Origin: Octopus bimaculoides
Lineage: Eukaryota
NCBI RefSeq assembly: GCF_001194135.2
Contig: NC_068985.1
Span: forward strand, 25,505,291 to 25,569,290
Reading direction: 5' to 3'
Length of the DNA: 64,000 bases
The notes below the pieces were generated by a model that was given only the letters and a program-made list of their open reading frames with translations, was not told the origin of the DNA and made no database searches. Positions 823-63,226 of this stretch are shown here, one piece after another. Numbering within the stretch: the first letter of the stretch is position 1; the number at the start of each line of letters is the position of its first letter. The translations under genes were made by a program, and so were the position numbers.

Positions 823-936
823 TGTTACAGATTGTGGAGCAACTTTGAGACTGGAAGCCACTTTGATTGCACCTGTATTTTCATCGATGAAGAAGAAATT
901 GGCAGTTGATGAAACTATCTTGTATTTTACTGTTCC
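823..936 (-). CDS. Cadherin exon E37 (type B, 38 aa) [38 protein letters not shown]
   Basis: tttcag| ... |gtgtgt, 114 nt; donor weaker than the others. Confidence 0.87.
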
Positions 937-2379: not shown

Positions 2380-2444
<65 letters not shown>

Positions 2445-2777
2445 TAGATAGATAGATAGATAGATATAGACAGATTTGATTCAGATAGATACAAAAAACA
2501 AGTCTTACTTGTAAATCTTGATCACGGGCACGAACAAGAAGAACACTCTCCTGTGGTGACAAAGTGTCATTGATAACTGCGTAATATGTAGATGTGATGA
2601 ACTGGGGAGGTATACTTTTTCGTACAGAGATGATGATTCTCATTTGTGTACATTTCAAAGGGATTCCATCATCACAAGCTTTAGCATCCAACTGCAAAAA
2701 ATATAAAAATACAGAATATTTTATTATATATTTGTTATATTTAGCTCATTACTTATATCTTTCTCTTTCTCCCTCAC

Positions 2778-2813
<36 letters not shown>

Positions 2814-4131: not shown

Positions 4132-6291
4132 TAGCAGTTCACCTTTGTCTAGGGTAGACTACTGCTGACTATTAAAAGAATTGTGCTTGTGCTTTTGACA
4201 GTAGCTATTTCAGTAAGCTCTTTTGGTAAACTCTACAAACAAAATCTGTTTGTGTACATCATTATGTAGAAGTATTTTCCACTGCATAACACTGTATCTT
4301 TATAAGCCTCAGCTAGATTTGTAAAATATGCTGCATGTAGTCAAATTTTTGTCTTTGTGTGTGCGTGTGTGTGTGCGTGTGTGTGTGTGTGTGCATGCGT
4401 ATGTGTGTGTGTGTGCATGTGCATGTACACATACATTTGTGGAATTTGAATTTGAAAACCTAGAAATTAATGTAAGAAAATTAAACTTTTAATTGTTTAA
4501 GTCAAAGTAACATATACTTACACTAAATTCATTGTAAGAGATATTTTTCAAGGATCTCAGCAGGTAAAGTATACCTGTGTCTTCTTCTAAAAAGAAATAG
4601 TTTGTGTTTCCAGTATTCTGTGACACCAAAGAGTAGGTTAACTTGTCCTAATAGTAGAATAAACAAATGATTATTTAAATATGAAACTTGTAAAAGACAA
4701 CAGAAGTTAAGAGATTATATAAATTAATAGAGGATAACATTTTACTAATAACAAACAATTCAAATGTTGCACAGAATATAATTATCAAAAAAATATTAAA
4801 AAAGGAAAGAGGTGCCCTCATTTTGAACATCAAATACTACAAGAAACTATGGTGTAAGATTTAAATGGTGTATTCAATATAAATTATCAAGTTTAAATTT
4901 TCAAGTTTAAACCTAATTTATAGAAACAAAAAGCACCTCTTAAGGTAGAACAAACATTAAAGAAACATCTGGAAGCTACTAACCTGTTGATCCTTGTCAT
5001 CAGCAGCCAGTTGTAAGACAGATGTACCAACTTGATAGTTTTCACTAATAGATTTATTATACAATCTACTCTCCCAGATTGGAGCATTAGGGTTTCGGGT
5101 TACATTAATCAATATCTGAGACATTGTTGAAACTTTTGTGTTACTTTCTTGATATGCAACCACATCCAACTAAAAATAGAAGAAATGAAAGGATACATAT
5201 ACAAAATACTGAAAAAGAATATCTTTTTTATTGCTTAATTAATATTAGAAAGCTAGTGTCTTTTATAGGACCTTTAAGATTGGTGGAGGCAAAAGAGGAA
5301 GAAACAACAATCCTCAAATTAGAAAATAGATCCAAATTCTTGCAACACAGCAAACTCTGCAAAAGGCACCCAAGAATCATATGGTTGGTAAACTGACCAC
5401 GTCAGGCCCAAATATTCTACCTGTTTTATGTTTAAATCAGCCAGATGTGGCTTCTCAAACATTCTCTACAATGCCATTTTAAAAATATGCAATCATATCA
5501 TTGAGATCTCAAAGCTATGAGATAATGCATGATTAATTCAAAACAATGTTAGTAAATATACATTGCATAAGACAGAGTAATATGAGTGCTCAAGGGCCAA
5601 GTAAGATTAGAAAATGCTGAGATGATTAATCGTTGTTCTTGAAGGAAAAATGATTGTTTTTTTGTTTTTTTTGTTATATTAATAATTCCTTTTAATATAC
5701 ATTATATTGATTTTTATAAATCAAGTTTGACTGAGATTTTTAATTCACTGAAGCAGTTCAAGAAATAAAAGATATTTTTTAAAAGGCTGGTCATTGCAAG
5801 AAACAATTTAACAAAGACTAACAGTTCAGTTGATTTGCATTTAAATTTGATATTAAGTCAATTGAAATTGATTTCCTAATTTTAAGGAAGATATGCACAA
5901 CAAGAGAGAAAGTGATTTACATTTCCACAGATATCAAAAATTTTTCAAGTTTCATGGGCTAAAAGGTACCAATCCAAGAAACATAATTCTAACAGGCTTA
6001 AGAGCCAGCCTTGTTCTTTTATATTCTTGCAATTTGTTTTCTGTAGATGTATTCTATCAACTGTGAATTTCATCCCATTTTTTACAGCACCTCTGAGACC
6101 CATAAACCAGATGTGTTGTTTTCAAACCTCAAATAGCTAAGAACCCAAGCCATACTTTTCTATTCAGCCACATCCAATGGTTGGTAATTTTACCTCTCCA
6201 TTTCTTGAAACACTTTGCCATGAAACTGTTCAGTAATATTAATTGGCTGTTATGATACTATAATGCTATACAAATAATGACAACAACAGCA

Positions 6292-8069: not shown

Positions 8070-10163
8070 TAAACAAAAACAACTTACAGTAAATGTAGTT
8101 AGAAACATATTTGGTTTCTTCAAGGTATCAATAAGTGAAACTACGCCTGTCAACTTGTCTATTTGGAAGAATGACAAAGCCGGATATTTTCCAGTCAGTT
8201 TATAATGTATGGATTTATTCTGTCAAAAGATGAAATAAAACAAAAATACAGAGGGAAAGGTTAAATTTAGTGAATGCAAAAATATTTCTGATGACATAAC
8301 TTCACTTATTATGTAAAAATAATTCTGTAGTTTTAAGAATAAACTATGTTTTATGTTAAAGAGCATGAGAAATATGAAGGACTTAAATCATTCACATAAC
8401 ATGATTAAGTTGTTTTTACATTCAAAAATACAATGGATTGTATAGGTTAAAATAAAATTTTCTATATATGTTTTGGAAAGATTGAAGGTAATTTTAGTGT
8501 TAACCTGTTGATTTGTAATAAGTAGCTGCTTTAGCACCACCCTACCTGGGACTAACTGTACCAAAGGGGTAATATTTAAATTAAAAATCTAGATCAAAAC
8601 TGTTTATAGCATGAATGATGTGAAATTCTGGTCTCTGCAGCATAATATATATCAATAATACAAAATTATAGATAGTTCAGTATAGAGACAAATTCTTCCC
8701 AAATCATGATTATATTTAATCAAAACATAAGCAGTCTAACCACATGAATTATATTCATTTTTTATTTTACATTTGAAGAGGAAATATTTTAAAATTAACT
8801 CATTGGTCTTAAATTTTGAAATTTTCATTCAAAATATCAAAAAAAATGTAATTATTTCTTCCATACATGTTTGCAGTAGTAAAGACAAAAAAAAATTTTA
8901 ATATAATTTTCCAGATGCTCACCACATTAGCTGCAACTTGTACCCAAGATGTTCTTACATTATATATGTCACCCAGAGATTTAGTATCATTTAAAGTTAA
9001 TGTGTGTGGAAGATTTAGAAACTGTATTTGGGGTTGGCTTCGAGTAACAGTTATAAAGACAGTTGCAGTTGCAGTATTTTCTGATACACGTTGGTCGCGA
9101 GCAGTGACAATCATCTTGAAGAAAAGATAAGAAGAAAAATTAAAAATGAGAATATCACAATTTTGCAATTTAAACATAAAATGAATTAAATAAAATAAGT
9201 AAAATGGTCATGGGCATGAGTTTGGACAAATAAGCTACCCCTCTACACAACTCCCCTCATCTTGTTTACCACTCTCTTTTTACCCTTTTCACTAAGCTCT
9301 AACACTAATCCCTTCTTTTCCCTCTTGTTCCTTCTATAGTCCCTCCCCTAACAGTGGCTACTATGTTCCTTTCTCCACTACATCCTCACTATAAATCTTC
9401 TTTTCTCATCATACTTCACCCCATCCCATCACTATGCCTAAGATCATTACCCTCTCTCCTATTCTCCTTTAAGCCTTTTAGTCTTGCAAGGCAATCTCTT
9501 TAGTGTTGACGACTTAAAAATAAGCATCCAGTACTCTCTGCAAAGTGGTTGATGCTAGGAATGGTATTTAGTCACTGAAACCATGCCAAAACAGACAGCA
9601 AAATGTAATGCAGTCCTCCAATATGTTAGATCCTGTCCAACTGTTCAATTCATTCCAGTATGGAGAATGGAAGTAAAATGATGATGATGATTATGACGAT
9701 GACATGATGTGATGCACAGAATTTTTATTATGTGAATTATAGTGACCAAAAGTCATTTCTGTTCGTAAAAATCTTTTTAATTGCCCAAGAAAGGTTGAGT
9801 AGACTATGTTATACTGAAGTGGTCTAACAGACAGAATTACGTCCATAGCTGTCCTTTGCCTGCATGTAGAGAAAAAGGCTTTCATTCTCCTATGTATGTT
9901 AATTAACTTTTAAGAGATTAATGCTTAACTTGTTAAAATTATCTCCCCTTTTATTTAATAGTTGATGCTCAGTTTTTGTTTTCTTTTTCCAACTGGGAGC
10001 CAAATTTCAAATAATTATGACTGTTTTGCATATGATACTAAAAAAAAATTGCCTCTTAACTTATTTATAATTTATTGTCTTCTACTATAGCTTTAGGGCT
10101 GACTAATGCCTTGTGAGTGGATTTGGCAGACAAACTGTGTGGAAACCTAATGTATGTATATAT

Positions 10164-10213
<50 letters not shown>

Positions 10214-10639
10214 GTATGTGTATGTATATATATAGTACCCCCTGACTGGCTCCCATGTCAGTGGCACGTAAAAAGCACTATCCAAATGTGATCAATGCCA
10301 GGACCGCCTGACTGGCCCTCATGCTGGTGGCATGTAAAAAGCACCATCTGAACGTGGCCGATGCCAGTACCCACTGACTGGCTCCTGTGCCAGTGGTATG
10401 TAAAAAGCACTAACTGAACGTGAACGAAGCCAGGCCCACCTGACTGGCCCCCATGCTGGTGGCACATAAAAAGCACCCACTACACTCTCGGACTGGTTGG
10501 CATTAGGAAGGGCATCCAGCTGTAAAAACATTGCCATATCAGATTGGAGCCTGGTGCAGCCGCTGGCTCTCCAGACTTCAGTCAAACCATCCAACCCCTG
10601 CCAGCATGGAAAATGGACGTTAAACGATGATGATGATGA

Positions 10640-10675: not shown

Positions 10676-12173
10676 TTTCATTTTTTATCTAGTTTCAGCT
10701 CATGAGCTGTGGCCATGCTGGGGCAATTCACTTCAGATTGCACAGGATCCTGTGTGATAACACAACAGTGGAAATTTCATGTGATTTACAATAAGAGCTG
10801 AAGCTTGTATGATGTAATTGCCATGTGCTAAGTGCATCCAATCATGCATATACATGTGTGTATGTGCATGTGTATGTGTGTGCATATGCATATGTGCATG
10901 TGCATGTGTCTATGTGCATGTGTGTGTACACATTGTGTGTGTATGTATGTGTGTGTGTGTATGTGTCTTTGTGTTTGTCTCCTCACTCCTCTAAATGACA
11001 ACCAGTCTTGGTTTGTTTACATCCCATAACTTAGTGTGTTCAGCAAACGAAACCAAGAGAACAAGTGCCAGACTTTAAAAAATAAGCACTGGGGTTGTGT
11101 TGTTTGATTAAACACTTCAAGGCAGTGCCCCAACATGGCCGCAAACTGATGTGTGAAGCAAGCAAAAGAAGCAAAGATAAAAGATGCCATCTACTTACCC
11201 TATAGAAAGTTGGATTCAGAGAATCAGAAGTCAGTGAATTTTTAACCAAAATTTTACCACTGTCTTTCATTAAATAAAAGTACTGAAGAGTGTTTGAGAG
11301 TCCAGTTGCTGAATACACAATGGTGTCCTGCATGTAATGAAAGGAAGAATTAATAAAATACCAATTTTTAAAAGAAAAGCAATGGAAAAATTTTTTTCAT
11401 ATCCCTTATATTTTATCAAAAGGTGGCAAGGCACTGAAGTTTTCACTTCCAGGCAGGTTTATTGACCTACAAGAACAGTTCACATTTGATCTGCTGATAA
11501 ATCTGCTGAAACTCTGTGCTAAAAGTAAAAGCTCAATATGTGTGAAGATATATCATCTGAATATAGTTAGATAAAAATTCGAAAGAAAAAATAAATATTT
11601 CCAATCTCTAATATTTTAATCTTCACCATTTTCTGAAATGCAAGCATGTATCAATCAAAATTGGAGAAACTTATTAATTTACACTGAATGAATAGGTGGT
11701 CATGGATTCTGTAATACAATGGAGTTTTTTTGTTGCTTTTTTTTAAAGCATTCGCTCATTACAAGGTCCTTACACCACTGAGTTTCTAGAATAAAATGGA
11801 CTCTAGACAGAAGTCAATAGGTGACGATGTGCATAAAGACTTAAAAGACTGGAAGTTATGTTGAAGAGGAAAACAAGACTGTGGAAGAGAATTCCAAAGT
11901 TCAGAGGTATGAGGGAAGAAACTGGTACTGTAAAGTGCTTTACAACACTTAGGAGTTATTATAAAATTGCTAGTTTCATGCATGCATGTATGTATGTATG
12001 TATGTATGTATGTATGTATATATGTCATTGTTCAGTTTTATATCAAGATTTCTTGTCAATAGAGAAAGAACCAGTTTCTAAGCTATATTCAAGGCTCCTT
12101 CATAGAAATTCCAACATCAACAACAGGATATTTTTGTTTGTATGTATGTATGTATGTATGTATGTATTCATGC

Positions 12174-12710: not shown

Positions 12711-13863
12711 CGTATGTGTGAATATATATGAGTAGAAATGAAAAAAATGGTGTTTTCCTCTCTATATTCCTGGTGAACATTTATATACCATAAATTTATG
12801 CCTCTGAAGCAATGGAATTAAAATTCACTTATTTGCAAAACAAGAAACTGTTGGCAACTGGATGTGCATCCAATTGCCAATGTAGTATCTTTACATGTAA
12901 CGCTAAAGATACTACCTTAAATAATACCTATTATATCTATACCAACATAGAAGTATGGATGTAAAATAGATTATTGAACAAATAATATTATAAAAACATC
13001 AGAAATCAAATATAATCTATGTTCATTACCATATCTAGATCTGTTGCTTTAATGGTAAGGATAACATCTCCAAGAGGTTTTGTGTCTGGAATTGTTACTT
13101 GATACTGATTTGCTGAAAATGATGGTGGATTGGCATTCCTTATCACATTTATGACATATTTGCCCTGGACTGTGTTTTCTGGATATAATGTATTGTAAGC
13201 TTCAACGTTGAGCTGAAAAATATGTATAAGAGATCTCTTTTATTTATAAATACATTTTTTATAGAATTAGGAAAATTAAAACTACATTTCTGTGAGAGCA
13301 ACCAAAAGAACATAATTACTGTAAGCATATTTCAAATATTCCACACTTTAAAAACATTCAGTGACATGAGAGATAGGTAACTGTACTGGTATGGGTATAT
13401 GATGCTTACAGAGCAGTGGTTATCAACCATTTTTTACCTATGGATCCCTTTGATTCCTATTTTATTCAAGCAGACCCTCATGTCCATCTGATGTTTAAAA
13501 AATCCATCTGTATTTTTATGATTAAATATTATTAGGAATTGCATTAAAAAACTTGTTAAAATATTTTGTTTACTGTAGAAGTATTAGCAATTTATTGCAT
13601 ATAAATTTTAACAAAATAATATTGTATGGACCCCCAAGGAGAACCCCTGATATACCAAATGAATGCCACATAGAGAAGTGCCAAGATTTAAAGTTAGGGG
13701 AACCTGCAGAAGAGGGAGCTCAAAGAAGGCTTGGGATGAAGTGCTGAAGGGTGACCTGAAAGTGCTATCTTTCACAAAACTGTACTCATTGGCAATACAC
13801 AGACACAGTGCTGCAGAAAACTATTCCACTAATGGCAAAATATAGAGCAGTATTTAGAAATGT

Positions 13864-36400: not shown

Positions 36401-36634
36401 ACAGGGACAACTGATGAAGGGGTATACTCTTTATGTTACATGTCTTGTTTCTCTTTTTTTTTGTTGTTCACAAAGAAGTTCGTTTCTATGTTTTNNNNNN
36501 NNNNNNNNNNNNNNNNNNNNNNNNNNNNNNNNNNNNNNNNNNNNNNNNNNNNNNNNNNNNNNNNNNNNNNNNNNNNNNNNNNNNNNNNNNNNNNNNNNNN
36601 NNNNNNNNNNNNNNNNNNNNNNNNNNNNNNNNNN

Positions 36635-50091: not shown

Positions 50092-50319
50092 TGCATGTGT
50101 GTGTTTGTATGTGTTATATACATACATATATATATATTTAAATATATANNNNNNNNNNNNNNNNNNNNNNNNNNNNNNNNNNNNNNNNNNNNNNNNNNNN
50201 NNNNNNNNNNNNNNNNNNNNNNNNNNNNNNNNNNNNNNNNNNNNNNNNNNNNNNNNNNNNNNNNNNNNNNNNNNNNNNNNNNNNNNNNNNNNNNNNNNNN
50301 NNNNNNNNNNNNNNNNNNN

Positions 50320-51735: not shown

Positions 51736-52719
51736 ACAAACTAAGTAAATAGGCATTTGAATTAATTTTTTTACAATCCAGCTGTCCTTTCACACGGAAT
51801 TTCGTCTTATCTTTAAACTCTGGCTCTGATGAGGCTTATATATGAGGGAATTGTTAAAATATCTAAGAATGTATATAAGTCGAAACAAATTGCCATCATA
51901 TGTTGAAAATATATGTTGAAGAAGAAACAAACAGTCAGGACTTACTGTGTAAGAGTTTGTATTTTCAGTATACAATGCTCTCAGTACTCTAATTTTCCCA
52001 TTTTGTGTAATATCAAAGAACTTTAATGCAGCAGCATCTCCTCTCAGACTGAAGTTTTGATATTCTTTTGGTGTCTGTTACATATAAAGAGCATTTATAG
52101 ATTTATTTTCTCTAAATTCAGCATGAACGATTTGATCAAAATTTTCATCAGATAAAAATATTAAGATATATTTTATTGTGGTTAGTTAAAATCAGGATAA
52201 GAATCATATGAAGAAACAATAGTATAATGTAATTACATTAATTAATTCAGATTGTTAATCAAATATTGTGTTTAGAATATGGTGAAACTTGCTATTTATT
52301 AAATGTTTAGCATAGTAGCTCCCTTTGGCTCATAAATACGTATATTCCTACATAAGATAGTTGATGTGATTTCAGAAAGATTTCACTAGAATTTCTATAA
52401 ATGTCAGTTATGTTATTTTTACTTGAATCTATTGTTAATTTTCATTAAACAATAATTTAATAGTATATAAATGTATGGTTTTTATTTAGTTATTTCAAGA
52501 AACAATAATCCTTTCTACTGGAGGCACAAGGCCTCAAATTTTGGGGGAGGGACTAATCGATTACATTGACTCTAGTGTTTACATTGGTACTTAATCTATC
52601 GGCCCCGAAAGGATGAAAAGCAAAATCAACCTCAGAGGAACTGAACTCAGAATGTAACAACAGGCGAAATACTAAGCATTTTGCCCGGCATGCTAATAGT
52701 TTGGCCATCTCACCGCCTT

Positions 52720-53017: not shown

Positions 53018-56000
53018 CTCAACCATATCTCAAAGAACTTCAAAAACAGACTGTGTTGACAAGTACTACCCACATTCTTAGAAAAAACACATTCAACTTA
53101 AATATTTATGTTGCCTTATATGAAGGACTAACTTCTCCTTCACAAGGTTTCAGTTATATTTCAACATCTCTTAAACTTCAGTTGCCCTAGGGCATTGGGT
53201 GTGTCCCAGCAAGTGATTGCATCAAACATGCATAGTTAAAAGAAAAATGATAATGGTAATGATAATAATAATAGCAAATAATTCTTACTTACAGTTTGTA
53301 CAATCAAATCAATGATGGTGGAGCCAACTGTTTCTGTTTCAAGAACTTCTATATTGTACACACTTTGTTGGAAACGTGGACGTGGCACATTCTGTGCTAA
53401 CTTTACCGTAGCTAACGTGGTATTTGAAAGGTATGGTGATCCATTGTCTCTTGCAAGTATTCGAATCTAAAACATTTAAAAAATATACTCAAATAAGTTT
53501 AATGATAAATCTCACTGTAAAATTAAACTGGTTTGTAAATATTTCTTTGCTTTATTCATTTCATAGTCATTCTAACATTCTAAGCAATGAATCTGTCATT
53601 CTAAATGGGCATATTATTATTTATATATTTAACCCTTTAGCATTCAGATTATTCTGTCAAATGTAATGCTTATATATTCATATTGTTTTGAATTAATCAT
53701 GCTTGTAGCTTTGAAATTTCTATGATGTGATTCTATAGTTTTAGAATTATATTCTAGGATAGGTGTAAGAGGCCAGATCTAGCTGGTTTGAGCATAAAAC
53801 AGGTAGAATATTTGAGCCAGATATGGCCAGTTTAAATACTAAAGGGTTAAAAGATAGAAATTTATAGAAATAACCTGAGATGCTTAAAGACACAAGAAAA
53901 AAGAGAGGGAGAAAAAGTAGAGGAAAATAGGGAAAGAAAGAGATAATTAACAATAGAAACTTTCCTACACCTAGATCAATAATTTCCAAATGCTTAAATT
54001 CAATAGGCGTGCCTATAAATAATTATAGTAGCAGAGTCTGCCTTTCCAGATTTAAGTATTGCAAAATATCCACTGGTCTACTGCAACAATCCTGTTTAAC
54101 AAACTGTGCAATGGCGAATTTCTGAGGGCCACTGTTCTGGAGAAAGATTGGACATAGCAGTCAATATGGAGAGGAGTGGGAAAGGGGGTGTTAAACACAA
54201 CCAGGATGATAAGTGGTGGAGAGATGAGTAGAACAGGGTTGCCTGAGTGCTAGTCGTATGTGACTAGTTAGCTCCAAAGAGTAGAGGTTATTATCCTTGC
54301 TTCTACTATAAACTTCAGTGACCATTAATCAGAGGAAAATACATTGACTAAAAATTTCCAGCTTTAATTTAGGTGTAACATTTTTCTGAAGAACTTCTGC
54401 TGAGAAATGTTTTAGGTGCTCTCCGATGTACTGTCCATTAGCATTCATTAATAATATATGACCTTAATGCATTATAGTGAAAAAGCTATCGTCTCATTTG
54501 GTCTCTCTTAATTTTGATCCAGAATGGTTATTTTTTGGTATGAGACCACATTGCATAATACTTATTATTTTTTTTATCAAGGTATATTGCACAATGCACT
54601 TTTTGCTGCATTGAGCCTTTTAAAATAATAATCATAATAATAATCCTTTCTACTATATTCAGAAGGCCTGAAATTTTGTAGAAGGAAACTAGTTGATTAC
54701 ATTGACCCCAAGTGTTCAACTGGTACTTAATCAATTGACTCCAGAAGGATAAAAGCAAAGTCAACTTGAGTATGAAGATGGACAAAATACCACTATTAAT
54801 GAATGCTAATTATTCTGCCAACTCACCGCCTTAACAACAACAACAACAACAACAATAATAATAATAATAATAATAATAATAAGGAGCCCAGTCTGAATAA
54901 CAACATGAATATGCTACACCAGGCTCTCTATTCAATAATGAACCCTAAGCATAACACCAACATGAACTTCTAACTTGTTGTCTCTTGAGGTCTCTGGGTA
55001 AGACTTGGAATTAACTTGTACAAATACAAATCAAAGTCGAACATATGACAACAACAACTCAACACATATGAAGCAGCAGTTTAATAACTTATCTCCTTGA
55101 CAATTTAATTTCAACAATTAAATGGTTAGATTATTCTAATGATAACAATAATGGCTTGTTGATTACAGCACTCTATCATAAATATTGGGAATGAGATTAA
55201 ATAATTAAATAAGAACTATTTACCTTGAATGTATCTTCTGCTGACGATGAAAGAGAATTCTTTATTGATACATCTCCTGTAGTGGGGGATATTGTAAAAT
55301 ACACAGCAGCTAATCCATCACCAGTAATTGCATAGGTGATTGTTCGAAAAGGTGACTTGAATAAAAGAAAAACGATTATATAAATAGATTCATGTGTTTA
55401 CAAATGAAAGTAAAGATCAATCAATATATGGTGCAAAGTTTATATTTATTGAGAATCAGTTGATCATTCACTACAGTGCTAACAGAGTTTTATGTATGTA
55501 ATATGTGTGATACTGTTTTTCCACACATCACCCTGAGATGTACCTGGACACATCATTAGTGATGTTTTGGATCTTTCAACATCAGACACCTCCACCAAAG
55601 TGACTCAGAAGTGTCACCAGCTATGCAGATAATACAAAATTATCACAGGCCATAAAGAACCCTGATGATATCACAAGCTTGTAGTGGGATTTAAAAGCAA
55701 TATACAAGTGGGCTGAACAGAACAATATGCAGTTTAATGCTGGAAAATTTCAAGCACTGCACTATCAGCTTACGGATGCACCTCAGCCTGCATATACAGG
55801 ACCTGAAGGCACTTCAATACCAGAGTCATAAACAGTGAAAGATTTGTGGATTAGTATGTGTAATGATGCGTCATTTCACATGCACACTACCAAGATGGCA
55901 ACAAAGTGTGGACACTAAAAGGACAAGAGACCAAGAAGTCATGTTACTGTGAGAGACCTTTGTTCTCATTCCCCTAGACTATTGTTCTCAACTCTTGTCA

Positions 56001-58465
56001 CCAGATAGTGTCAAACTAACAGCAAAGCTTGGAGCAATCCAACACTACTACACTAAAAATATTGCTACAATGTAGCAGATGAACTACTGAGAAAGGTTGT
56101 AAAAACTACAACTTTACACCCGAGAGCAAAGACATGAAACACATGTAATAATTTAGATGTGGAAAATTCTGAAAGGGTAGAACCTATTTTTGGCATCAAG
56201 AATTACACAAATGCCCATACTGGATGTCATTGCATAGTATCAAAGGTACAATCCACTTTGTCTAAAGTGAGGAGCAGGTAACTACTCGTCAATGCTCTGC
56301 CAAAAGAATTAAGAAACTAAATAATGTGGATGAAGATGTCTTCAAAAAGAATTGGCTATTTTCCTATCCATGATACCAGATGAACCAACATTCTGGCATG
56401 ACATAAAGACAAAGGTAGCAGTGTCAAATTCCCTCATACACTAAATGAGCCAACAATTAAAAAAGCACATGTAAAAGTGGTGATGTAAAATCCCATGACC
56501 CAGAAATCAATCCCATAAGAGGGCTGTGGAAAGGATACAAAGTATGACCACAGCCACATTATTCTTAGCCATAAAATGGTGGGTCGCACACGCACAAATA
56601 TACACATATAGACGAGTCTTCTATCAGTTTCTGTGTACAAAATCCACTCACAAGGCTTTGGTTGGCTTGAGGCCATAATAAATATATATATATGCATATA
56701 TNNNNNNNNNNNNNNNNNNNNNNNNNNNNNNNNNNNNNNNNNNNNNNNNNNNNNNNNNNNNNNNNNNNNNNNNNNNNNNNNNNNNNNNNNNNNNNNNNNN
56801 NNNNNNNNNNNNNNNNNNNNNNNNNNNNNNNNNNNNNNNNNNNNNNNNATATATATATACATAGTGAAATTAATAAAAATGAAAGTATTAAAAGTGAAAC
56901 CATATGATAATGAAGCTATTATATCACATTACAATAGAGATGTTATTGTTTCATGTTTGACACGTAATACCAAAACAGTCTAAGAGATTGCTCTGGGCTT
57001 TCATTAGGCAAGGAGTTGAACATTTTTTCTAACCGTGACACTCCATGGCCCCTGAGTAAGGCATGTGTAAAATTTGAATGAAATCGGTTGGATGGTCCTT
57101 AAGTTTTAGTGATGGACACATACACACAGACAGGCAGAGACACTCACATACACACACACATTCTCAGTTTTATATATATAGATTCTCAGATCTTAGTGAT
57201 GCACACATACACACAGACAGACACACATTCTCAGTTTTATAAATATAGATAAGTTGAAATTCAAATTTTTACATGTTAACATGCGTAAATATCTTGAAAA
57301 AGAGTAGCGTGGAGTTAATCATACCAAATTAAACTTACACATGTACACAGACATACCTTTATGCTAACTATATATGTGGCACCAATAATACTTGGTTACC
57401 TTGACCATTTTGAAGATGGATACACACATACTCAACAAGCATAAGAGTTATCTGTCCCTGATGATGTAAGTCTGGTTATCATAAATTTACAACAACATAT
57501 GTTTCTTCTAAAAAAAGACCAAAATCGCTCAAAAGATATCTGAAAGGAATAATAAAATGGTAATTACTTACATAAGAATCAGCATCAGTTGCAGAAGCTC
57601 TGAAAACTAAGTCGCCAACTGAAGAACTTGGTGTTAATCTAACTTCATAGGGAACATTCACGAATTGTGGTACGAATAAATTCCTGATGACGGTGATTGT
57701 CAGTTTACTTGAAATTTCTTTGGGTGAAACTAACCCTTTTTCTTCTGCACTAACAGTAAGCTACAATTTAAGGATATAAACATTTTAAAAGGTAAACTGC
57801 TGTTAGTGAAGAATAATAATAAAATAAAATGAGAACTATTGTTTTTAAGTATTTATATTACAATTGAAATACAGAGAACATAAATACCATAAAGCAAAAT
57901 GTATTGTGAAAAGGACTGACTTACTTCAAATTGGCTTATTGTACGATTATTCCCGAAAGGAACCCTGGTGAAAATTTTGCCACTTATTTCGTCTATATAA
58001 AATATGTTATATTTATCAATGATTTTGTACAGAATCTGGTTGTTGGGTGGCTGAAATAGAGTCAAATATATAATTCATTGAAAAAGATAATTCATAAATA
58101 CACACACATACACAAATTAGGACATATATATATATCATCATCATCATCATCATCGTTTAACGTCCGCTTTCCATGCTAGCATGGGTTGGACGATTTGACT
58201 GAGGACTGGTGAAACCGGATGGCAACACCAGGCTCCAGTCCGATATATATATATATATATATATAGATGCAGCACAGAATTTTGTCAGTGAACAGGTCAT
58301 GGTCTCAAAGCAACGAAAATATTTTGGCAAATTAAATTTAACCGTTGAAGTGAATCTAACGATCTTTGTGTGTTTTTAAATGGCTTACAAACGTCTTCCA
58401 CACTGCAATAGTTTTTGTTCTAGCACACGATCTCAGATCAGGTCACTTGCTATGCAAGTACATCT

Positions 58466-60106: not shown

Positions 60107-63100
60107 ACATGTGTGTCCAATTTCCATCCACCAAATTCTCTTACAAAGTATCAGTTGCCCTATGCAACAGTAGAAGGCACTTGTCCAAGGTATTGTACAG
60201 TGGAAAGGTACCCCCCCCCCCATAACCATGTAATTGTGAAGCAAACTTCTTATCTACACAGCCATGTCTGCACATATGGATATTTTAATTCTGAATGACA
60301 TACATGTAACTTCTTTGAGAAATAAAACTGACTTCAAAAGTTTATCATAAAAGATTTAATGATAAACTTATTCTGTAGAGAATTATATTGATTAGAAGTA
60401 GTCAATTAAATATTTCAGTACAATAAGATAAGTCTATTTATTTACAAACAGATTGGACTTTCATCACTTCTCAAGCTAGTGTGATTCAATTGGGAACAGT
60501 TTCCACATCTGTAGAATAGTTATTACATACTATTGACTAATTGTCTTGGTAATGTAATAGACAAGCATTCCCCTCAAGTAGAAATGAATTCCTTTTTAGT
60601 AATATATATTAAGTCTTTTACATGTACCGCTTCCAGAAGACATAACTATTCTTCACTGTGAATCAATGAGTCAGGCTCTATAAGACAATGCAGGAGTCTC
60701 TATATGATTCTTGACTTGCTAGAATTAGCAGCCAAGTATCCCTTAATTCAGATCTGTCTTAAAGAAAGAAAGAATGCAATAGATAATGTGGTTCTTGACA
60801 CTCCTAAAGAGATGGGGTGAAAATGGCAAGAATATCTTTGGCTATAAGTCTGCTCAATTTGGGGTGATCTGGGGATAAGCAACAACAAAATCATCAATTA
60901 TCTTTTGCAATTAGCTGAACTAAGTTGTGGATTATTAGAAAGAAACACTTGAAGTAGATATGAACTTATAAGTTTGAATTAGTAATTCAATACCTTATCC
61001 ATTATGTAATAAATACACACTGGATAATACAAGCCTTGAAAAGATGGAATAGTTTAGGATGAAACACCTTTAATAATTAAACATGCAGGATTAAGACAGA
61101 CCTGAGGTAAACCACAAACACAGCTTGTAAAAACACCTTCTTGGAAAACATCCCTGAAATGGAAATAAAGCAACCAAAGTGTACATACCTGATCTCTATC
61201 TGTTGCGCTTAGAGTATATACTGGTGTGTTGAGTGAATGGTCTTCATAAACAGTAGTCAAAAATGGAGGAGTAACTTCCCACTGAGGTCCAAACTGGTTT
61301 CTTTCAATGTTAATTGTCAGTATTTTAAATTGTTCACAATTGGGGTTGATATTGCGAACACGGATATTTAGCTAAAAAAGATCATTACATATCAGTTTAT
61401 TAAGAATTATATAAAAGCAAAATAAGAAAATGAGTCAAAATCATTAAGTCTACTAGTAACTGTATTTTGAGGTAAATAGTTAACTGTATGTGAGGCAATG
61501 GTTGACTACATTAATGTTGAGACAAATGGCTGAGGCCATCGTTAATCATATTGCCTTCACAGACCCTCTGAGACAGGTGAGACTTGATGTTCAGTTTGAA
61601 TACCTGTCTCAAGTGGGCCTGGTTAAAGGGGCTATGTAACTAGCTAATACAGAGCAGCAAAGAATGTTATTGTAGAAATAGAATAGTTAGAGTGTAGAGA
61701 CAATGTGGGCAAAATGTTTTAGTATGTTGTGAGTGAGACTTTCGGATGATTAATAAAAACAAAACAAAATACTATAATTAAGCCACTTTCACGATCTTTT
61801 GTGTTTGAAATATTTCTAGATTGTCTATCTGTTTCAAATTAATGTTAAAAAATAATCAAGAATTAAAAGGAATTGACTATTATAAATCATTTTTTCATTA
61901 AGATCGTGTAAGGAACATAGCTTAACAAGTGATTTTCATCTAAATTTATCAAGGAAAATTTTAATTTCAATGTGAACATTTTGAAAATGGACAAAACTAA
62001 AAATCAATATGTCTCATGTAGAAGATCTGAACAAATAAAAGATAAAATAAATTAGGGATTTATAAATGAATTAGCAACATAATTGCTATGAAACTTAATA
62101 GTAGTATTGAATCTCAGACTAAAGGATTGCAGTTTCCTTTTCACTCACTAAGCATTGTACTGAGCCCTTGAGCAAGGTATATAATTGTACTTGCTCTAGT
62201 TTACCTAAAAGAAAAAATATAATTGACTTATTAGTAATGTCACAGAAGAGCATCCGTTTGTTGTTATCCTATCTGCTCGGCTGACCTCCCCTGTTCGAAG
62301 GTTATAATGGACACAGATTCATGTGTCACATAGCTAGCTAGAGGCGATGGCCTCTTGGAGTTAATCAATAGCAGCATTTGTCCTATTTTTTGGACTGCCA
62401 TGTTGGCTTGGCGATATTATTAATATCCAGTATCGCTGCTGTAGTCTCCTTTAGAGAGACTTAAAAATATTAATATTTCTATTTAAAAAAAAAAATGAAT
62501 TTTGATAATAAAAAGATTTGCTCGCAATTCTTGTATACTTAGTGTGAGTGTATTATGTTTTGAAAAGCTATCTAAATGATTAGCTCAAAGTGGTTTACCA
62601 ATCGTCTTATCTTTACCTACAGATATCCTCTCTTCTTACTGTCACTTCTAACTCTACTATAATAGCCTCTACTTCCCAGAGCTGGCTGATTTTATGCCAT
62701 TTCACACTAACCCACCTAAGTCTCTCATCTGTCCTCCCATCCCCCACATTGTGTCCTTCCACTATTAGGCTCCATACTAAAAATGTGGTTCACAGTTCTT
62801 CCTCTTCAGAATTCCAGCCATCTAGATTCCTCCTTGCCCATGTTCTGCTTGCAGCTAGCAACTTTCAGTTATTCAGAAGACTGATTTTCAGGATCTCTAA
62901 AGACCCTGGGCAGAGAGACCTTTAAACCAGACTAAAACAGTTTAAAAAAAAAAAAAAAAGGATGAAAACCTGTGGTGGCTAAAAATATTTTAATAGAAAT
63001 ATAATGAACAGAATCTTCATTTGATTTTAGATGTTGATATGGAATAAGATAAGATAACACAGATAAAAATGAGTAATGTATACATTGTACTTACTCTGTA

Positions 63101-63226
63101 GACTTCTTTTGATTCCTGTGAGACACTTTTTAGCACATAGACAGAATTAGTATTTGAATTGATACCAAAGAATGATGCACTGTCATCCTGACCAACCACA
63201 TCCAGCTTTATGGCACTACCATTTAA
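823..63226 (-). CDS. Partial giant cadherin-repeat (Fat/Dachsous/CDH23-like, atypical) gene: 37 exons, ~1,903 aa, ~18 EC repeats, open at both ends
   Basis: 37 stop-free phase-0 exons with AG/GT ends translate to repeated cadherin-fold motifs (AxD..P, PxF...Y...I.E...G..V..V.A.DxD, Y.I.G....F.I...TG.I....L); no signal peptide, TM or cytoplasmic region seen. Confidence 0.92.
1289..2250 (+). mobile_element. Decayed mariner (Tc1/mariner, DD34D-type) transposase
   Basis: [13 protein letters not shown].. then [48 protein letters not shown]; later [51 protein letters not shown]; several frameshifts and stops. Confidence 0.92.
2372..2470. repeat. (AGAC)n(AGAT)n compound tetranucleotide repeat
   Basis: Direct reading. 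Confidence 0.97.
2509..2691 (-). CDS. Cadherin exon E36 (type A, 61 aa) [61 protein letters not shown]
   Basis: ttgcag| ... |gtaaga, 183 nt. Confidence 0.94.
3695..3912 (-). mobile_element. tRNA-derived SINE family 1 (A/B boxes on minus strand; central GCCTTTCATCC..GGGGTCGATAAA..AAGTACCAG resembles the MetaSINE domain)
   Basis: About 11 related copies: 3695, 21640 (opposite strand), 24140, 25345, 34700, 39710, 47850, 49350, 52507, 52762, 54640; B-box GAGTTCAAATTCC. The Meta-domain label is from recall and not verified. Confidence 0.8.
4522..4647 (-). CDS. Cadherin exon E35 (type B, 42 aa) [42 protein letters not shown]
   Basis: tattag| ... |gtaagt, 126 nt. Confidence 0.93.
4984..5169 (-). 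CDS. Cadherin exon E34 (type A, 62 aa) [62 protein letters not shown]
   Basis: ttttag| ... |gttagt, 186 nt. Confidence 0.94.
5385..5600. mobile_element. Old inverted copy of the piggyBac-like MITE at 53629-53850
   Basis: Shares AAATATTCTACCTGTTTTATG and CATGATTAATTCAAAACAAT blocks in reverse complement. Confidence 0.6.
6660..7700. mobile_element. ~1 kb element with ~270-bp terminal inverted repeats (foldback/MITE-like)
   Basis: 6666-6933 is the reverse complement of 7431-7694 with scattered mismatches and indels; ~500-bp non-coding spacer. Confidence 0.8.
8088..8219 (-). CDS. Cadherin exon E33 (type B, 44 aa) [44 protein letters not shown]
   Basis: tgacag| ... |gtaagt, 132 nt. Confidence 0.92.
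8923..9114 (-). CDS. Cadherin exon E32 (type A, 64 aa) [64 protein letters not shown]
   Basis: ttcaag| ... |gtgagc, 192 nt; lacks DxD. Confidence 0.88.
10238..10641 (+). mobile_element. (GAT)n-tailed retroposon 3' segment with four ~65-bp internal tandem units
   Basis: GGAGTGGTTGGC.TTAGGAAGGGCATCCAGCTGTA...CCAACCCATGCCAGCATGGAAA..GGACGTTAAACGATGATGAT; other copies at ~9490, 16190, 18930, 20470, 26965, 30300, 51290 (+) and 58140 (-). Confidence 0.88.
11199..11327 (-). CDS. Cadherin exon E31 (type B, 43 aa) [43 protein letters not shown]
   Basis: atgcag| ... |gtaagt, 129 nt. Confidence 0.93.
11790..11965 (-). mobile_element. 3' end fragment of a CR1/Jockey-group LINE
   Basis: Translation [35 protein letters not shown] matches the typical post-RT C-terminus. 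Confidence 0.7.
13030..13212 (-). CDS. Cadherin exon E30 (type A, 61 aa) [61 protein letters not shown]
   Basis: tttcag| ... |gtaatg, 183 nt; not in the ORF track. Confidence 0.94.
13414..13649. mobile_element. hAT-type MITE
   Basis: Ends CAGTGGTTATCAAC ... GAGAACCCCTG form an imperfect TIR; no clear TSD. Confidence 0.6.
13660..13810 (+). mobile_element. RTE-clade LINE C-terminal fragment
   Basis: [26 protein letters not shown] resembles the GRGRPKKTW.EV...DL end of 29800-30030. Confidence 0.65.
14031..14302. other. Largest assembly gap (272 N); other gaps near 3378, 6414, 12277, 31750, 36495, 48914, 50148, 51643, 56702
   Basis: N runs, nearly all flanked by (TA)n or (CA)n repeats. Confidence 0.99.
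14400..14880 (-). mobile_element. Decayed RTE (BovB-like) LINE 3' end
   Basis: [40 protein letters not shown] and terminal WICNLCG..H Cys/His motif. Confidence 0.55.
15160..15790 (-). mobile_element. Decayed RTE-like LINE fragment
   Basis: Pyrimidine-rich plus strand; minus frames give broken VLRR...KM.GEG..KVG C-terminal RTE-like motifs. Confidence 0.45.
16543..16668 (-). CDS. Cadherin exon E29 (type B, 42 aa) [42 protein letters not shown]
   Basis: ttgcag| ... |gtaaga, 126 nt. Confidence 0.93.
17270..17512 (-). mobile_element. tRNA-derived SINE family 2 (related copies 22840-23163 minus, 44235-44520 plus)
   Basis: Minus strand begins GTGGCATAGTGGTTAGGGTGTTGCACTCATGATCACAAGATCGTGGTTTCAGTTCC (tRNA-like A/B boxes). 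Confidence 0.75.
17548..17730 (-). CDS. Cadherin exon E28 (type A, 61 aa) [61 protein letters not shown]
   Basis: tttcag| ... |gtaatt, 183 nt. Confidence 0.94.
18320..18560 (+). mobile_element. 3' fragment of an RLE-type (CRE-like) non-LTR retrotransposon; second copy ~45553-45700 on minus strand
   Basis: [24 protein letters not shown]...[23 protein letters not shown] matches the FxPxxxETxG...FQRLSxAVQRGNAxxV C-terminus. Confidence 0.8.
19503..19634 (-). CDS. Cadherin exon E27 (type B, 44 aa) [44 protein letters not shown]
   Basis: ttgcag| ... |gtaagt, 132 nt. Confidence 0.93.
19790..20350 (-). mobile_element. RTE-clade LINE 3' fragment
   Basis: [21 protein letters not shown] / [34 protein letters not shown]. 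Confidence 0.7.
20978..21120 (-). pseudogene. Fossil (pseudo-)exon: decayed copy of a type A exon most similar to E28
   Basis: Core aligns to E28 at about 75-80% nt ([13 protein letters not shown] / [18 protein letters not shown] vs [35 protein letters not shown]); 7-nt frameshifting deletion, GT donor lost. Confidence 0.8.
21229..21411 (-). CDS. Cadherin exon E26 (type A, 61 aa) [61 protein letters not shown]
   Basis: ttgcag| ... |gtaagt, 183 nt; most textbook-like EC segment. Confidence 0.95.
22396..22518 (-). CDS. Cadherin exon E25 (type B, 41 aa) [41 protein letters not shown]
   Basis: tttaag| ... |gtaagc, 123 nt. Confidence 0.93.
23561..23737 (-). CDS. Cadherin exon E24 (type A, 59 aa) [59 protein letters not shown]
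   Basis: gaacag| ... |gtaaga, 177 nt; linker and DxD both degenerate. Confidence 0.9.
23807..23873. repeat. (AG)n microsatellite inside the 208-nt intron E23-E24
   Basis: Direct reading; reads as a (CT)n pyrimidine tract on the coding strand. Confidence 0.95.
23946..24065 (-). CDS. Cadherin exon E23 (type B, 40 aa) [40 protein letters not shown]
   Basis: tttcag| ... |gtgagt, 120 nt. Confidence 0.91.
24430..25308. mobile_element. Mariner derivative built from two inverted left ends (TA-flanked)
   Basis: TA|TGAGGTCTGATCAATAAGTATC ... GATACTTATTGATCAGCCCACA|TA; plus strand has an HTH fragment ([33 protein letters not shown]); minus strand has [12 protein letters not shown]. Confidence 0.88.
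26689..26868 (-). CDS. Cadherin exon E22 (type A, 60 aa) [60 protein letters not shown]
   Basis: tttcag| ... |gtatga, 180 nt. Confidence 0.93.
27615..28039 (+). mobile_element. Full-length tRNA-derived SINE family 3 with internal (TA/TG)n and (GAGTAAA)n tail; CORE-like GGCACCTTGGGCAAG motif
   Basis: A/B boxes TGGCTGTGTGGTAAG / GGTTCATTCCC; fragments at ~10075, 10960, 19120, 56600, 58500, 60100. Confidence 0.85.
29100..30569 (+). mobile_element. 5'-truncated RTE-clade LINE: RT 3' half, Cys-rich insert, 3' UTR and (GAT)n tail
   Basis: ELLYADD at 29121-29141; C..C...HKRCS....C..C insert; FCYLG-like YCYLG; GRGRFRKTW; continues into the UTR shared with the short (GAT)n-tailed copies. Confidence 0.9.
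30644..30769 (-). CDS. Cadherin exon E21 (type B, 42 aa) [42 protein letters not shown]
   Basis: ttacag| ... |gtaagt, 126 nt. Confidence 0.92.
30885..31016. mobile_element. ~130-bp MITE with ~26-bp TIRs; second copy 33283-33413
   Basis: AATGGGG..GGTTTATGGGATTA ... TAATCCCATAAACC..CCCATT in both copies. Confidence 0.8.
32095..32277 (-). CDS. Cadherin exon E20 (type A, 61 aa) [61 protein letters not shown]
   Basis: tttcag| ... |gtaagt, 183 nt. Confidence 0.93.
32836..33260 (-). mobile_element. Non-autonomous hAT element retaining the transposase C-terminal (dimerisation) tail
   Basis: TIR CAGGGCCGGATT / AATCCAGCACTG; 8-bp TSD GATGTAAA/GATGTAGA; internal [30 protein letters not shown]. Confidence 0.82.
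34461..34679. repeat. ~220-bp near-perfect palindrome (foldback MITE)
   Basis: ~100-bp arms TTGGTTTTCTGAAA.CATGCTTACTC... / ...GAGTAAGCATGCTTTCAGAAAACCAA with a short loop. Confidence 0.9.
35059..35172 (-). CDS. Cadherin exon E19 (type B, 38 aa) [38 protein letters not shown]
   Basis: acttag| ... |gtgagt, 114 nt. Confidence 0.88.
35748..35930 (-). CDS. Cadherin exon E18 (type A, 61 aa) [61 protein letters not shown]
   Basis: taccag| ... |gtaagt, 183 nt; not in the ORF track. Confidence 0.93.
36165..36494. repeat. Identical 135-bp direct repeat (36165-36299 / 36360-36494) abutting a gap
   Basis: Exact duplication with 195-bp offset. Confidence 0.9.
36800..36925 (-). CDS. Cadherin exon E17 (type B, 42 aa) [42 protein letters not shown]
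   Basis: ccacag| ... |gtaagt, 126 nt. Confidence 0.92.
37450..37638 (-). CDS. Cadherin exon E16 (type A, 63 aa) [63 protein letters not shown]
   Basis: attcag| ... |gtaagt, 189 nt. Confidence 0.94.
37900..38430 (-). mobile_element. Possible highly decayed Penelope-like RT fragment
   Basis: Broken frame ..[24 protein letters not shown].. resembles the PLE RT N-terminal region. Confidence 0.35.
38988..39122 (-). CDS. Cadherin exon E15 (type B, 45 aa) [45 protein letters not shown]
   Basis: ttacag| ... |gtaaga, 135 nt. Confidence 0.92.
40177..40350 (-). CDS. Cadherin exon E14 (type A, 58 aa) [58 protein letters not shown]
   Basis: tttcag| ... |gtaagt, 174 nt. Confidence 0.93.
40578..40800 (+). 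mobile_element. Penelope-like element RT fragment
   Basis: [42 protein letters not shown] resembles LD.FL.P....PSYI.DT.DF....L.T.DV.SLY..I.H. Confidence 0.75.
41480..42440 (-). mobile_element. L1/Tx1-clade LINE 3' fragment
   Basis: zf-RVT-like [25 protein letters not shown] (CxxC..T..H....C). Confidence 0.75.
42704..42829 (-). CDS. Cadherin exon E13 (type B, 42 aa) [42 protein letters not shown]
   Basis: ttttag| ... |gtaaga, 126 nt. Confidence 0.92.
43588..43764 (-). CDS. Cadherin exon E12 (type A, 59 aa) [59 protein letters not shown]
   Basis: ctacag| ... |gtaagt, 177 nt; AKDAGVP motif; lacks DxD. Confidence 0.92.
45175..45303 (-). CDS. Cadherin exon E11 (type B, 43 aa) [43 protein letters not shown]
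   Basis: acacag| ... |gtaagt, 129 nt. Confidence 0.93.
45830..46430 (-). mobile_element. Mariner 5' fragment (left TIR and HTH region)
   Basis: [46 protein letters not shown]; TIR-like GTAGTATTAAAAAGTTCCTGGAA. Confidence 0.8.
46544..46729 (-). CDS. Cadherin exon E10 (type A, 62 aa) [62 protein letters not shown]
   Basis: tttcag| ... |gtaaga, 186 nt; classic AKDDGTPP motif. Confidence 0.95.
46941..47324 (+). mobile_element. Young tRNA-derived SINE (family 4) with 13-bp TSD AGTGCTGTAACAG
   Basis: TSD at 46928-46940 and 47325-47337; A/B boxes TGGCCCAGTGGTTAGG / GGTTTCGATTCC; highly similar copy at 59168. Confidence 0.92.
48394..48540 (-). CDS. Cadherin exon E9 (type B, 49 aa) [49 protein letters not shown]
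   Basis: tttcag| ... |gttagt, 147 nt; YEIIGDD.A..YF.I...TG motif. Confidence 0.92.
49753..49932 (-). CDS. Cadherin exon E8 (type A, 60 aa) [60 protein letters not shown]
   Basis: catcag| ... |gtaagt, 180 nt. Confidence 0.93.
50602..50675. repeat. Short hairpin/mini inverted repeat GAATGGAGATTTGCACAT ... ATGTGCAAATCTCCATTC
   Basis: 18-bp perfect arms. Confidence 0.85.
50700..51290 (-). mobile_element. RLE-type (R4/Dong-like) LINE 3' fragment
   Basis: [23 protein letters not shown] / [36 protein letters not shown]...PIIIGALG (PD..D restriction-like endonuclease). Confidence 0.85.
51946..52074 (-). CDS. Cadherin exon E7 (type B, 43 aa) [43 protein letters not shown]
   Basis: taacag| ... |gtaagt, 129 nt. 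Confidence 0.9.
52507..53017 (-). mobile_element. Head-to-tail dimer of SINE family 1 embedded in (AAT)n
   Basis: Copies 52507-52719 and 52762-52952 separated and followed by (AAT)n. Confidence 0.88.
53293..53466 (-). CDS. Cadherin exon E6 (type A, 58 aa) [58 protein letters not shown]
   Basis: ttttag| ... |gtaagt, 174 nt; ARDNGSP motif; lacks DxD. Confidence 0.92.
53629..53850. mobile_element. piggyBac-like MITE
   Basis: TTAA|CCCTTTAG ... CTAAAGGG|TTAA ends. Confidence 0.85.
55224..55355 (-). CDS. Cadherin exon E5 (type B, 44 aa) [44 protein letters not shown]
   Basis: ttcaag| ... |gtaaat, 132 nt; not in the ORF track (too short). Confidence 0.92.
55590..56450 (+). mobile_element. CR1-clade LINE RT 3' half (decayed)
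   Basis: [44 protein letters not shown]; DEPT..NSL C-terminus. Confidence 0.85.
56985..57250 (+). mobile_element. Helitron/Helentron-associated (HINE/DINE-like) non-autonomous element with a duplicated 3' end
   Basis: AAATTTGAATGAAATCGGTTG..GTTTTAG..(ACAG/AC)n CATTCTCAGTTTTATA.ATATAGAT, present twice. Confidence 0.55.
57572..57760 (-). CDS. Cadherin exon E4 (type A, 63 aa) [63 protein letters not shown]
   Basis: ttgtag| ... |gtaagt, 189 nt. Confidence 0.92.
57925..58050 (-). CDS. Cadherin exon E3 (type B, 42 aa) [42 protein letters not shown]
   Basis: tttcag| ... |gtaagt, 126 nt. Confidence 0.9.
58780..59900 (-). mobile_element. CR1-clade LINE 3' fragment interrupted by a SINE
   Basis: Same family as 55590-56450 (FRTRDQK..LKQLN...RESWERYVV then ..[24 protein letters not shown]). 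Confidence 0.8.
59168..59547 (+). mobile_element. Young SINE family 4 copy with 12-bp TSD ATATCACTACAT
   Basis: TSD at 59156-59167 and 59548-59559. Confidence 0.92.
61189..61371 (-). CDS. Cadherin exon E2 (type A, 61 aa) [61 protein letters not shown]
   Basis: tttttag| ... |gtatgt, 183 nt; RNQFGP linker, ATDRD. Confidence 0.9.
63095..63226 (-). CDS. Cadherin exon E1 (type B, 44 aa) [44 protein letters not shown]
   Basis: ttggtag| acceptor, |gtaagt donor, 132 nt; GxD.A..F.I motif; more diverged than the other B exons. Confidence 0.8.

Follow-up and report, generated by a model that had tools for sequence, protein, structure and literature searches.

A segment of a giant octopus cadherin gene with alternating phase-0 exons, probably an ancestral array of two-exon units

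Repeat proteins such as collagen, with its 54-bp exons, and titin and nebulin, with their repeat exons, are encoded by symmetric exons, and their one-phase exon units duplicate and can be added or removed in frame. The same probably holds for a cadherin gene of Octopus bimaculoides, which we analyzed in a 64,000-nucleotide (nt) stretch of assembly GCF_001194135.2 (contig NC_068985.1, positions 25,505,291 to 25,569,290 of the forward strand; referred to as the window, with positions counted from its first letter). The gene differs from collagen, titin and nebulin in that its introns lie at two points inside the domain and not at domain borders, with two exons per period. We consider it likely that the window holds 62 kb from the interior of a very large gene for a single-pass cadherin, an ancestral array of exon units that is spliced consecutively.

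Among cadherins, PCDH15 and CDH23 are long, multi-exon and non-classical, as is the window gene. CDH23 has 27 canonical extracellular cadherin repeats (ECs), whereas the family to which the window gene is assigned below, here called the RN-linker family, has non-canonical linkers. The canonical Ca2+ linker motif set is XEX-DXD-D(R/Y)(D/E)-XDX-DXNDN (PMC7547225). The EC5-6 linker of PCDH15 lacks DRE, carries PPNNQ in place of DxNDN and keeps DxD and xDx; it holds one Ca2+ at site 3, takes several orientations and is flexible (PMC7547225). Nearly every window linker shows the same motif pattern, but what is one atypical linker among canonical ones in PCDH15 is the rule in the window gene, which has in addition a conserved Arg-Asn that is absent from PCDH15.

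FAT/FAT4 and Dachsous combine very long EC arrays with a single transmembrane segment, as does the RN-linker family, and some Ca2+-free linkers of FAT/Dachsous-type proteins bend the ectodomain, according to a passage of PMC7547225 that cites Tsukasaki 2014 and Jin 2012. FAT has about 32-34 ECs with mostly canonical linkers in few giant exons, whereas the RN-linker family has about two exons per EC. A cadherin with 77 (or >70) ECs and high expression in suckers has been described in O. bimaculoides itself (Albertin et al. 2015 and Wang & Ragsdale 2017, as cited in PMC6339937 and PMC6062618) and, like the window gene, is an octopus gene of giant size with dozens of ECs; neither of the two citing papers mentions exon layout or unusual linkers. 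The window gene is a candidate for a part of this protein, an assignment toward which we lean, and the sucker cadherin is probably a member of the RN-linker family.

Exon layout of the window

The gene model was rebuilt from the raw sequence by profile searches of stop-free segments on both strands of the window, using profiles seeded with a few visible cadherin-like open reading frames (ORFs), after which in-frame AG and GT were marked. The matching stop-free pieces (18 of type A and 19 of type B, among them exon 3, a B piece recognized by eye in the ORF list) were confined to the minus strand, and the same searches gave no significant A- or B-type match on the plus strand. A canonical acceptor and donor were present at the expected alignment position of every A/B segment. 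The resulting model comprises 37 minus-strand exons running from 63226 down to 823, of which 19 are B (114-147 nt) and 18 are A (174-192 nt); the two types alternate throughout, with a B exon at either end. Every exon is bounded by an in-frame AG and GT. The original prediction of 37 strictly alternating exons was thereby borne out, as were its lengths in multiples of three (37/37) and its phase-0 introns (36/36), and the limits it gave for the array coincide exactly with the outer exon ends.

Introns interrupt each EC at two fixed positions. The first separates the conserved "Y-x" from "L-x-V-x-A-x-D" and so falls two residues inside the F-strand motif, not before the F strand as had been predicted, and the second lies 1-3 residues past the "A-x-D-x-D" loop. 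A B exon accordingly encodes EC strands C-E with "Y-x" at its end, and an A exon encodes "L-x-V-x-A-x-D" (strands F-G) and the linker and then crosses into the following EC, of which it covers strands A-B up to just past "A-x-D-x-D"; the claim that the duplication unit straddles the domain boundary was thus upheld. Donors are close to GTAAGT (+3 A in 31/37, +4 A in 34/37 and +5 G in 34/37), and donor and acceptor strength is uniformly high, with no difference between A and B exons.

The joined exons encode 1903 amino acids (aa) comprising 18.5 EC repeats, in which Pfam PF00028 identified 16 significant cadherin domains (E 3.6e-153), and the best PDB sequence matches are all cadherins. By its tandem EC domains the window gene is a member of the cadherin superfamily.

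When 1.84 billion representatives were searched by HMMER with the homologue P0001 from Elysia as query, the predicted protein of the window locus, an independent public gene model, was recovered (P0104; UniParc UPI0006955DBA, 2803 aa). P0104 holds 23 window exons at 100% identity with identical boundaries, together with exon 32 shortened by 12 residues, and drops 13/37 window exons, always in frame: the single B exons 3, 7, 17, 33 and 35, the block 19-24 and the pair 27-28. Its residues 468-1740 correspond to the window, and residues 1-467 upstream and 1741-2803 (1063 aa) downstream lie outside it. Since these outer parts are made up of more ECs like those of the window, the gene runs well past both window ends, and its EC count is at least about 31 (P0104 plus the exons that P0104 omits); no signal peptide or membrane segment was found in the parts of P0104 outside the window. 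The exons are listed below with their type and length, coordinates, strand, means of detection (profile search or splice sites), presence in P0104 and matches to the abalone protein P0091 and to an oyster fragment.

Exon 1, B, 44 aa, strands C-E: 63095..63226, minus; splice sites; in P0104 at 100%
Exon 2, A, 61 aa, strands F-G + linker + next A-B: 61189..61371, minus; profile; in P0104 at 100%
Exon 3, B, 42 aa: 57925..58050, minus; ORF list by eye and splice sites; not in P0104; counterpart in abalone P0091
Exon 4, A, 63 aa: 57572..57760, minus; profile; in P0104
Exon 5, B, 44 aa: 55224..55355, minus; profile; in P0104
Exon 6, A, 58 aa, DxD lost: 53293..53466, minus; profile; in P0104
Exon 7, B, 43 aa: 51946..52074, minus; profile; not in P0104; abalone-aligned
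Exon 8, A, 60 aa: 49753..49932, minus; profile; in P0104
Exon 9, B, 49 aa: 48394..48540, minus; profile; in P0104; best match of the first oyster exon
Exon 10, A, 62 aa: 46544..46729, minus; profile; in P0104; oyster match
Exon 11, B, 43 aa: 45175..45303, minus; profile; in P0104; oyster match
Exon 12, A, 59 aa, DxD lost: 43588..43764, minus; profile; in P0104; oyster match
Exon 13, B, 42 aa: 42704..42829, minus; profile; in P0104
Exon 14, A, 58 aa: 40177..40350, minus; profile; in P0104
Exon 15, B, 45 aa: 38988..39122, minus; profile; in P0104
Exon 16, A, 63 aa: 37450..37638, minus; profile; in P0104; colinear oyster exon 57% identical
Exon 17, B, 42 aa: 36800..36925, minus; profile; not in P0104; abalone- and oyster-aligned
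Exon 18, A, 61 aa: 35748..35930, minus; profile; in P0104
Exon 19, B, 38 aa: 35059..35172, minus; profile; not in P0104; abalone-aligned
Exon 20, A, 61 aa: 32095..32277, minus; profile; not in P0104; abalone-aligned
Exon 21, B, 42 aa: 30644..30769, minus; profile; not in P0104; abalone-aligned
Exon 22, A, 60 aa: 26689..26868, minus; profile; not in P0104; abalone-aligned
Exon 23, B, 40 aa: 23946..24065, minus; profile; not in P0104; abalone-aligned
Exon 24, A, 59 aa, DxD lost: 23561..23737, minus; profile; not in P0104; abalone-aligned
Exon 25, B, 41 aa: 22396..22518, minus; profile; in P0104
Exon 26, A, 61 aa: 21229..21411, minus; profile; in P0104
Exon 27, B, 44 aa: 19503..19634, minus; profile; not in P0104; abalone-aligned
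Exon 28, A, 61 aa: 17548..17730, minus; profile; not in P0104; abalone-aligned
Exon 29, B, 42 aa: 16543..16668, minus; profile; in P0104
Exon 30, A, 61 aa: 13030..13212, minus; profile; in P0104
Exon 31, B, 43 aa: 11199..11327, minus; profile; in P0104
Exon 32, A, 64 aa, DxD lost: 8923..9114 (alternative donor 8959-9114), minus; splice sites; shortened in P0104; abalone
Exon 33, B, 44 aa: 8088..8219, minus; profile; not in P0104; abalone counterpart 50% identical
Exon 34, A, 62 aa: 4984..5169, minus; profile; in P0104
Exon 35, B, 42 aa: 4522..4647, minus; profile; not in P0104; abalone-aligned
Exon 36, A, 61 aa: 2509..2691, minus; profile; in P0104
Exon 37, B, 38 aa: 823..936, minus; profile; in P0104

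The 3' end of exon 32 lies either at 8923 (64 aa, favored by the abalone alignment) or at 8959 (52 aa, the version in P0104), both of which are phase 0. The window is AT-rich (34% GC) with many microsatellites and contains 10 runs of N (introns 4, 7 (two runs), 8, 17, 20, 29, 30, 33 and 35; among them 48914-48932, 50149-50319, 51643-51702, 56702-56848 and 36495-36634), all of which are intronic and touch no exon, and the A/B alternation is unbroken across each. No exon pair seems to be hidden in a gap, because P0091 aligns to residues 1-1895 of the window product with no indel >8 residues and hence no unit-sized piece missing at the gaps; two ENA proteins likewise align without a unit-sized indel over exons 11-37.

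Orthologues, family and linkers

The B+A units of the window share 18-38% pairwise identity (mean 27%), and identity does not vary periodically with lag; there has been no recent duplication or homogenization. Against abalone P0091 the colinear register scored 839 bits and the next register 468 bits, and P0091 has a one-to-one counterpart for each of the 37 window exons. For the oyster fragment, one register against exons 9-19 scored 315 bits at 37% identity, with the next at 190 bits, and the best window matches of the oyster exons were, in order, exons 9, 10, 11, 12 and 16. No unique register against the window was found for the Elysia array, nor against any orthologue for a second octopus-like fragment (P0112), which may be an upstream part of this gene. 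In comparisons that covered abalone, oyster and the two ENA proteins, each repeat thus has its own orthologue across molluscan classes, and the one-to-one match to abalone indicates that the full consecutive isoform is a conserved protein.

To determine intron position and phase in other species, annotated homologues were mapped exactly onto their own genomic loci, with the following results.

Elysia marginata (sea slug), P0001: 19/19 introns phase 0; exons alternate between 129-141 and 186-201 nt
Saccostrea cucullata (oyster), P0002: 13/13 introns phase 0; A/B pattern as in the window
Haliotis rubra (abalone), P0003: A/B pattern over aa 428-1026; N-terminal part irregular, with a canonical linker
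Lingula anatina (brachiopod), P0118: 63/70 mapped introns phase 0, the whole EC array included
Tubulanus polymorphus (nemertean), P0122: 43/50 mapped introns phase 0, the whole EC array included

The residue contexts of the junctions in all five species are those of the window. Lingula and Tubulanus further share an identical membrane-proximal phase run (2,1,1,0,0,2,2,2) and a phase-0 intron in the tail motif, and both contain fused A+B exons (300 and 306 nt in Lingula; 303 nt in Tubulanus, plus a 432-nt multi-exon fusion). As controls, a CDH23-like gene of a brittle star (P0031) has 12 irregular introns of phases 0,2,0,0,1,1,1,1,0,0,1,0, and a 7723-aa cadherin of Nematostella (LOC116612238) has about 12 exons and is encoded for the most part by a single one of 15,954 nt; together with the large exons of octopus protocadherins (PMC10084454), the latter bears out the contrast with giant-exon cadherins drawn in the original prediction. 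On this mapping, the design of two introns per EC is a trait of one gene family and would be older than the mollusc-brachiopod-nemertean split. Our literature search on intron phase or exon duplication in cadherin repeats found nothing relevant.

Two further features of these genes were recorded. In Haliotis rubra P0003, the introns upstream of the A/B array (aa 1-428) are irregular and differ in phase, and a linker there is canonical (DQNDxxP); the linker at the start of P0112 is canonical as well (DINDNTP). These genes may follow another plan in their N-terminal part. In Lingula P0118, aa 787-1077 form an exact tandem duplication of a B-A-B block that creates a B-to-B join; either the assembly is in error here or a unit may have been copied very recently.

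Family status was assessed by counting linker motifs over the 150 best matches. The counts separated these matches cleanly. Eleven proteins had 0-2 canonical linkers and many RN linkers, and two more were of mixed type; of the 11, the 9 with a named organism all come from lophotrochozoans. The remaining best matches, Nematostella and the sponge Sycon among them, have canonical linkers. Pfam searches of six family members, three of which reach the membrane, returned cadherin domains only, with no EGF or laminin-G domain in Lingula P0118, Tubulanus P0122 or Patella P0099. Members from Lingula, Tubulanus, Patella and Potamilus share a transmembrane segment preceded by "DDPW" (pattern "DDPWxALIA...") and a short tail with "QSLxMFxPPDE...LGExN"; the C-terminal end of the octopus protein lies beyond the window and is missing from P0104. 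The window itself bears both marks of the family, in that its linkers read xRNxxxPxF without DRE and with DxD and xDx kept, and 36/36 of its introns fall at the two phase-0 sites. From these sequence comparisons we recognize a lophotrochozoan "RN-linker" family of giant cadherins that spans at least three phyla, with members in molluscs, a brachiopod and a nemertean.

Relatives of the window gene are automatically named "protocadherin Fat 4-like", "Fat 1-like" or "CELSR2-like", although domains diagnostic of the families so named are lacking, and the "Fat 4-like" names are unsupported because EGF and laminin-G domains are missing. The original prediction had left room for an already described, named cadherin of the same layout; orthologues do share the layout, but their names are only automatic and inconsistent. 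Assignment to FAT or FAT-like cadherins was rejected because membrane-reaching relatives lack EGF and laminin-G and the linkers are non-canonical throughout, and a protocadherin (6-7 ECs plus the transmembrane segment in one large exon) because 37 exons here encode 18.5 ECs. CDH23 was rejected likewise, as there is no preferential similarity and the brittle-star P0031 differs in its irregular, mixed-phase introns and in its canonical linkers, of which 5/7 have D at both acidic positions. The Lingula member ends in -TEL, which resembles the PDZ-binding end of CDH23. The main interest of the locus lies in this mislabelled and poorly described family, which stands apart in gene structure, in tail motif and in the chemistry of its linkers.

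In a motif census of the window, linkers carried xRNxxxPxF in place of DxNDNxPxF, with canonical DxNDN in 0 of 16-18 linkers and DRE in 0/19 B exons. DxD was kept in 14/18 repeats and the xDx Asp in 13/18, and the linker Arg and Asn were present at 10/18 and 10/16, respectively. Compared with its orthologue in abalone, the octopus copy has degenerated further (linker Arg 10/18 vs 30/31; four window repeats without DxD). Linker profiles from 355 ECs of 16 family proteins were then compared with those from 265 ECs of canonical giant cadherins.

Position 101: family Arg 82%, canonical Asp 70%
DRE acids: family 27% and 20%, canonical 80% and 80%
XEX Glu: family 61%, canonical 95%
DxD: family 89% and 86%, canonical 97% and 95%
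xDx Asp: family 91%, canonical 92%

ECs that have an XEX acid tend also to have R/K101 (odds ratio 8.7, Fisher p 3.6e-9, shared ancestry ignored). As a hypothesis only, Arg101 might form a salt bridge with the XEX acid and thereby replace Ca2+ at sites 1 and 2. By analogy with the EC5-6 linker of PCDH15, each linker is predicted to hold about one Ca2+ (site 3), and the chain would be flexible or elastic and not a rigid rod; the near-universal Arg-Asn replacement raises the question of the mechanics of a chain of 30-77 RN-linker repeats.

Growth and splicing of the array

The reading we favor is that the EC array of the RN-linker family is old and arose when a unit of two exons, with about 315 nt of coding sequence, was duplicated in tandem; two phase-0 introns, neither of them at the domain boundary, interrupt this unit. 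Where introns share a phase, unequal crossing-over inside them would copy whole units with the frame intact, and for this reason every repeat would have the same two introns. The layout would then be a conserved record of gene growth, kept for >500 million years, and not a device specific to this locus, and the exons would be spliced consecutively into one very long ectodomain. So read, the locus is of an ordinary kind, in which duplication of exon units has enlarged a cadherin gene to giant size.

The principal alternative, to which we give little credence, is that A/B exon pairs are skipped in a regulated manner, yielding tissue-specific lengths and hybrid ECs for combinatorial adhesion or a graded spacer in suckers; if true, many ectodomain lengths and hybrid domains would come from a single locus. 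All exons are 0-0 symmetric and any exon or pair can be removed without a frameshift, and once an A+B or B+A pair is removed, A and B exons alternate again and a hybrid of EC length is left (strands A-E of one repeat with F-G of another, or A-B with C-G). The skip tolerance put forward in the original prediction stands in so far as exon removal keeps the frame, but its view of the layout as special to this locus does not, because the same layout occurs in molluscs, a brachiopod and a nemertean (five species of three phyla) and is not a cephalopod innovation. Some of these introns have been lost in Lingula and Tubulanus, which suggests that the split of the unit is dispensable. Neighboring repeats are only about 27% identical, and the stability of a hybrid beta-sandwich is not obvious. 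Apart from transposon ends and microsatellites, the introns contain no paired elements, and no selector or docking sequences of the Dscam type were found. Positional orthology and the uniformly strong splice sites are further, weak arguments against skipping.

The omissions in P0104 bear on both sides of this question. Its joins A18-B25 and A26-B29 are two clean A+B-type skips, and an unrelated giant cadherin, Nematostella LOC116612238, has RefSeq length isoforms (7723, 7285 and 6411 aa). The five single-B omissions, however, join A to A and leave ECs without strands C-E, which would be unable to fold and suggest prediction errors. Abalone counterparts exist for 13/13 of the omitted exons, and against the abalone protein the 37-exon product scored 839 bits over 1895 aa, compared with 581 bits over a longer span for P0104 (a weak point against skipping). 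The omissions in P0104 therefore look like gene-prediction errors, eased by exons that are all phase 0: where exons are symmetric, predictors can drop them without frame penalty. The locus needs re-annotation, and isoform or length diversity taken from such gene models is untrustworthy without long-read cDNA. The splicing-combinatorics idea is unlikely, and no evidence here favors skipping.

That the regular array is an artefact of assembly or annotation (repeats wrongly collapsed or expanded around the N gaps, for example) or consists of pseudogene copies in decay is highly improbable. It would be in keeping with the ten N gaps in the region, the exact 135-nt duplication adjoining one of them and the loss of DxD in four ECs. 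The repeats are too divergent (18-38% identical) to be assembly duplicates, however; the gaps and the 135-nt duplication are all intronic, 37/37 exons are open with canonical splice sites intact, and the product is colinear with the abalone orthologue with no unit-sized indel.

Several points weigh against ancestral unit duplication with consecutive splicing, or against what we attach to it. Consecutive splicing is deduced and not observed, and the two clean pair skips in P0104 could in principle be real isoforms. Beyond molluscs no unique register was found, with Lingula and Tubulanus giving near-equal scores in several registers. The Ca2+ stoichiometry and the Arg-Glu pairing are predictions. 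The link to the 77-EC sucker cadherin is circumstantial, and gastropods have at least 2 paralogues, each of which has a transmembrane segment (Patella P0099 and P0121).

Intronic elements

The introns of the window contain several kinds of repeated or mobile sequence. Intron 36 carries a mariner-type transposase remnant (1311-2000, plus strand), whose ORF at 1842-2000 matches Pfam Transposase_1 (E 5.5e-14). Intron 21 has retroelement-like ORFs (29362-30033, plus strand), of which 29362-29793 is 80% identical to an uncharacterized Octopus bimaculoides protein, a match in keeping with the species. The exact 135-nt direct duplication lies in intron 17 (36165-36299 and 36360-36494, adjoining the N gap 36495-36634) and is probably an assembly artefact. 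A dispersed intronic repeat pair of about 380 nt (46937-47321 and 59164-59547) is 93-94% identical, and an intronic family resembling short interspersed nuclear elements has four copies, at 10436, 18925, 20551 and 27001. Two elements of about 850 nt (24430-25308 and 6762-7602), each within one intron, resemble non-autonomous DNA transposons: both end in inverted repeats, 181-201 nt long and 84-88% complementary.

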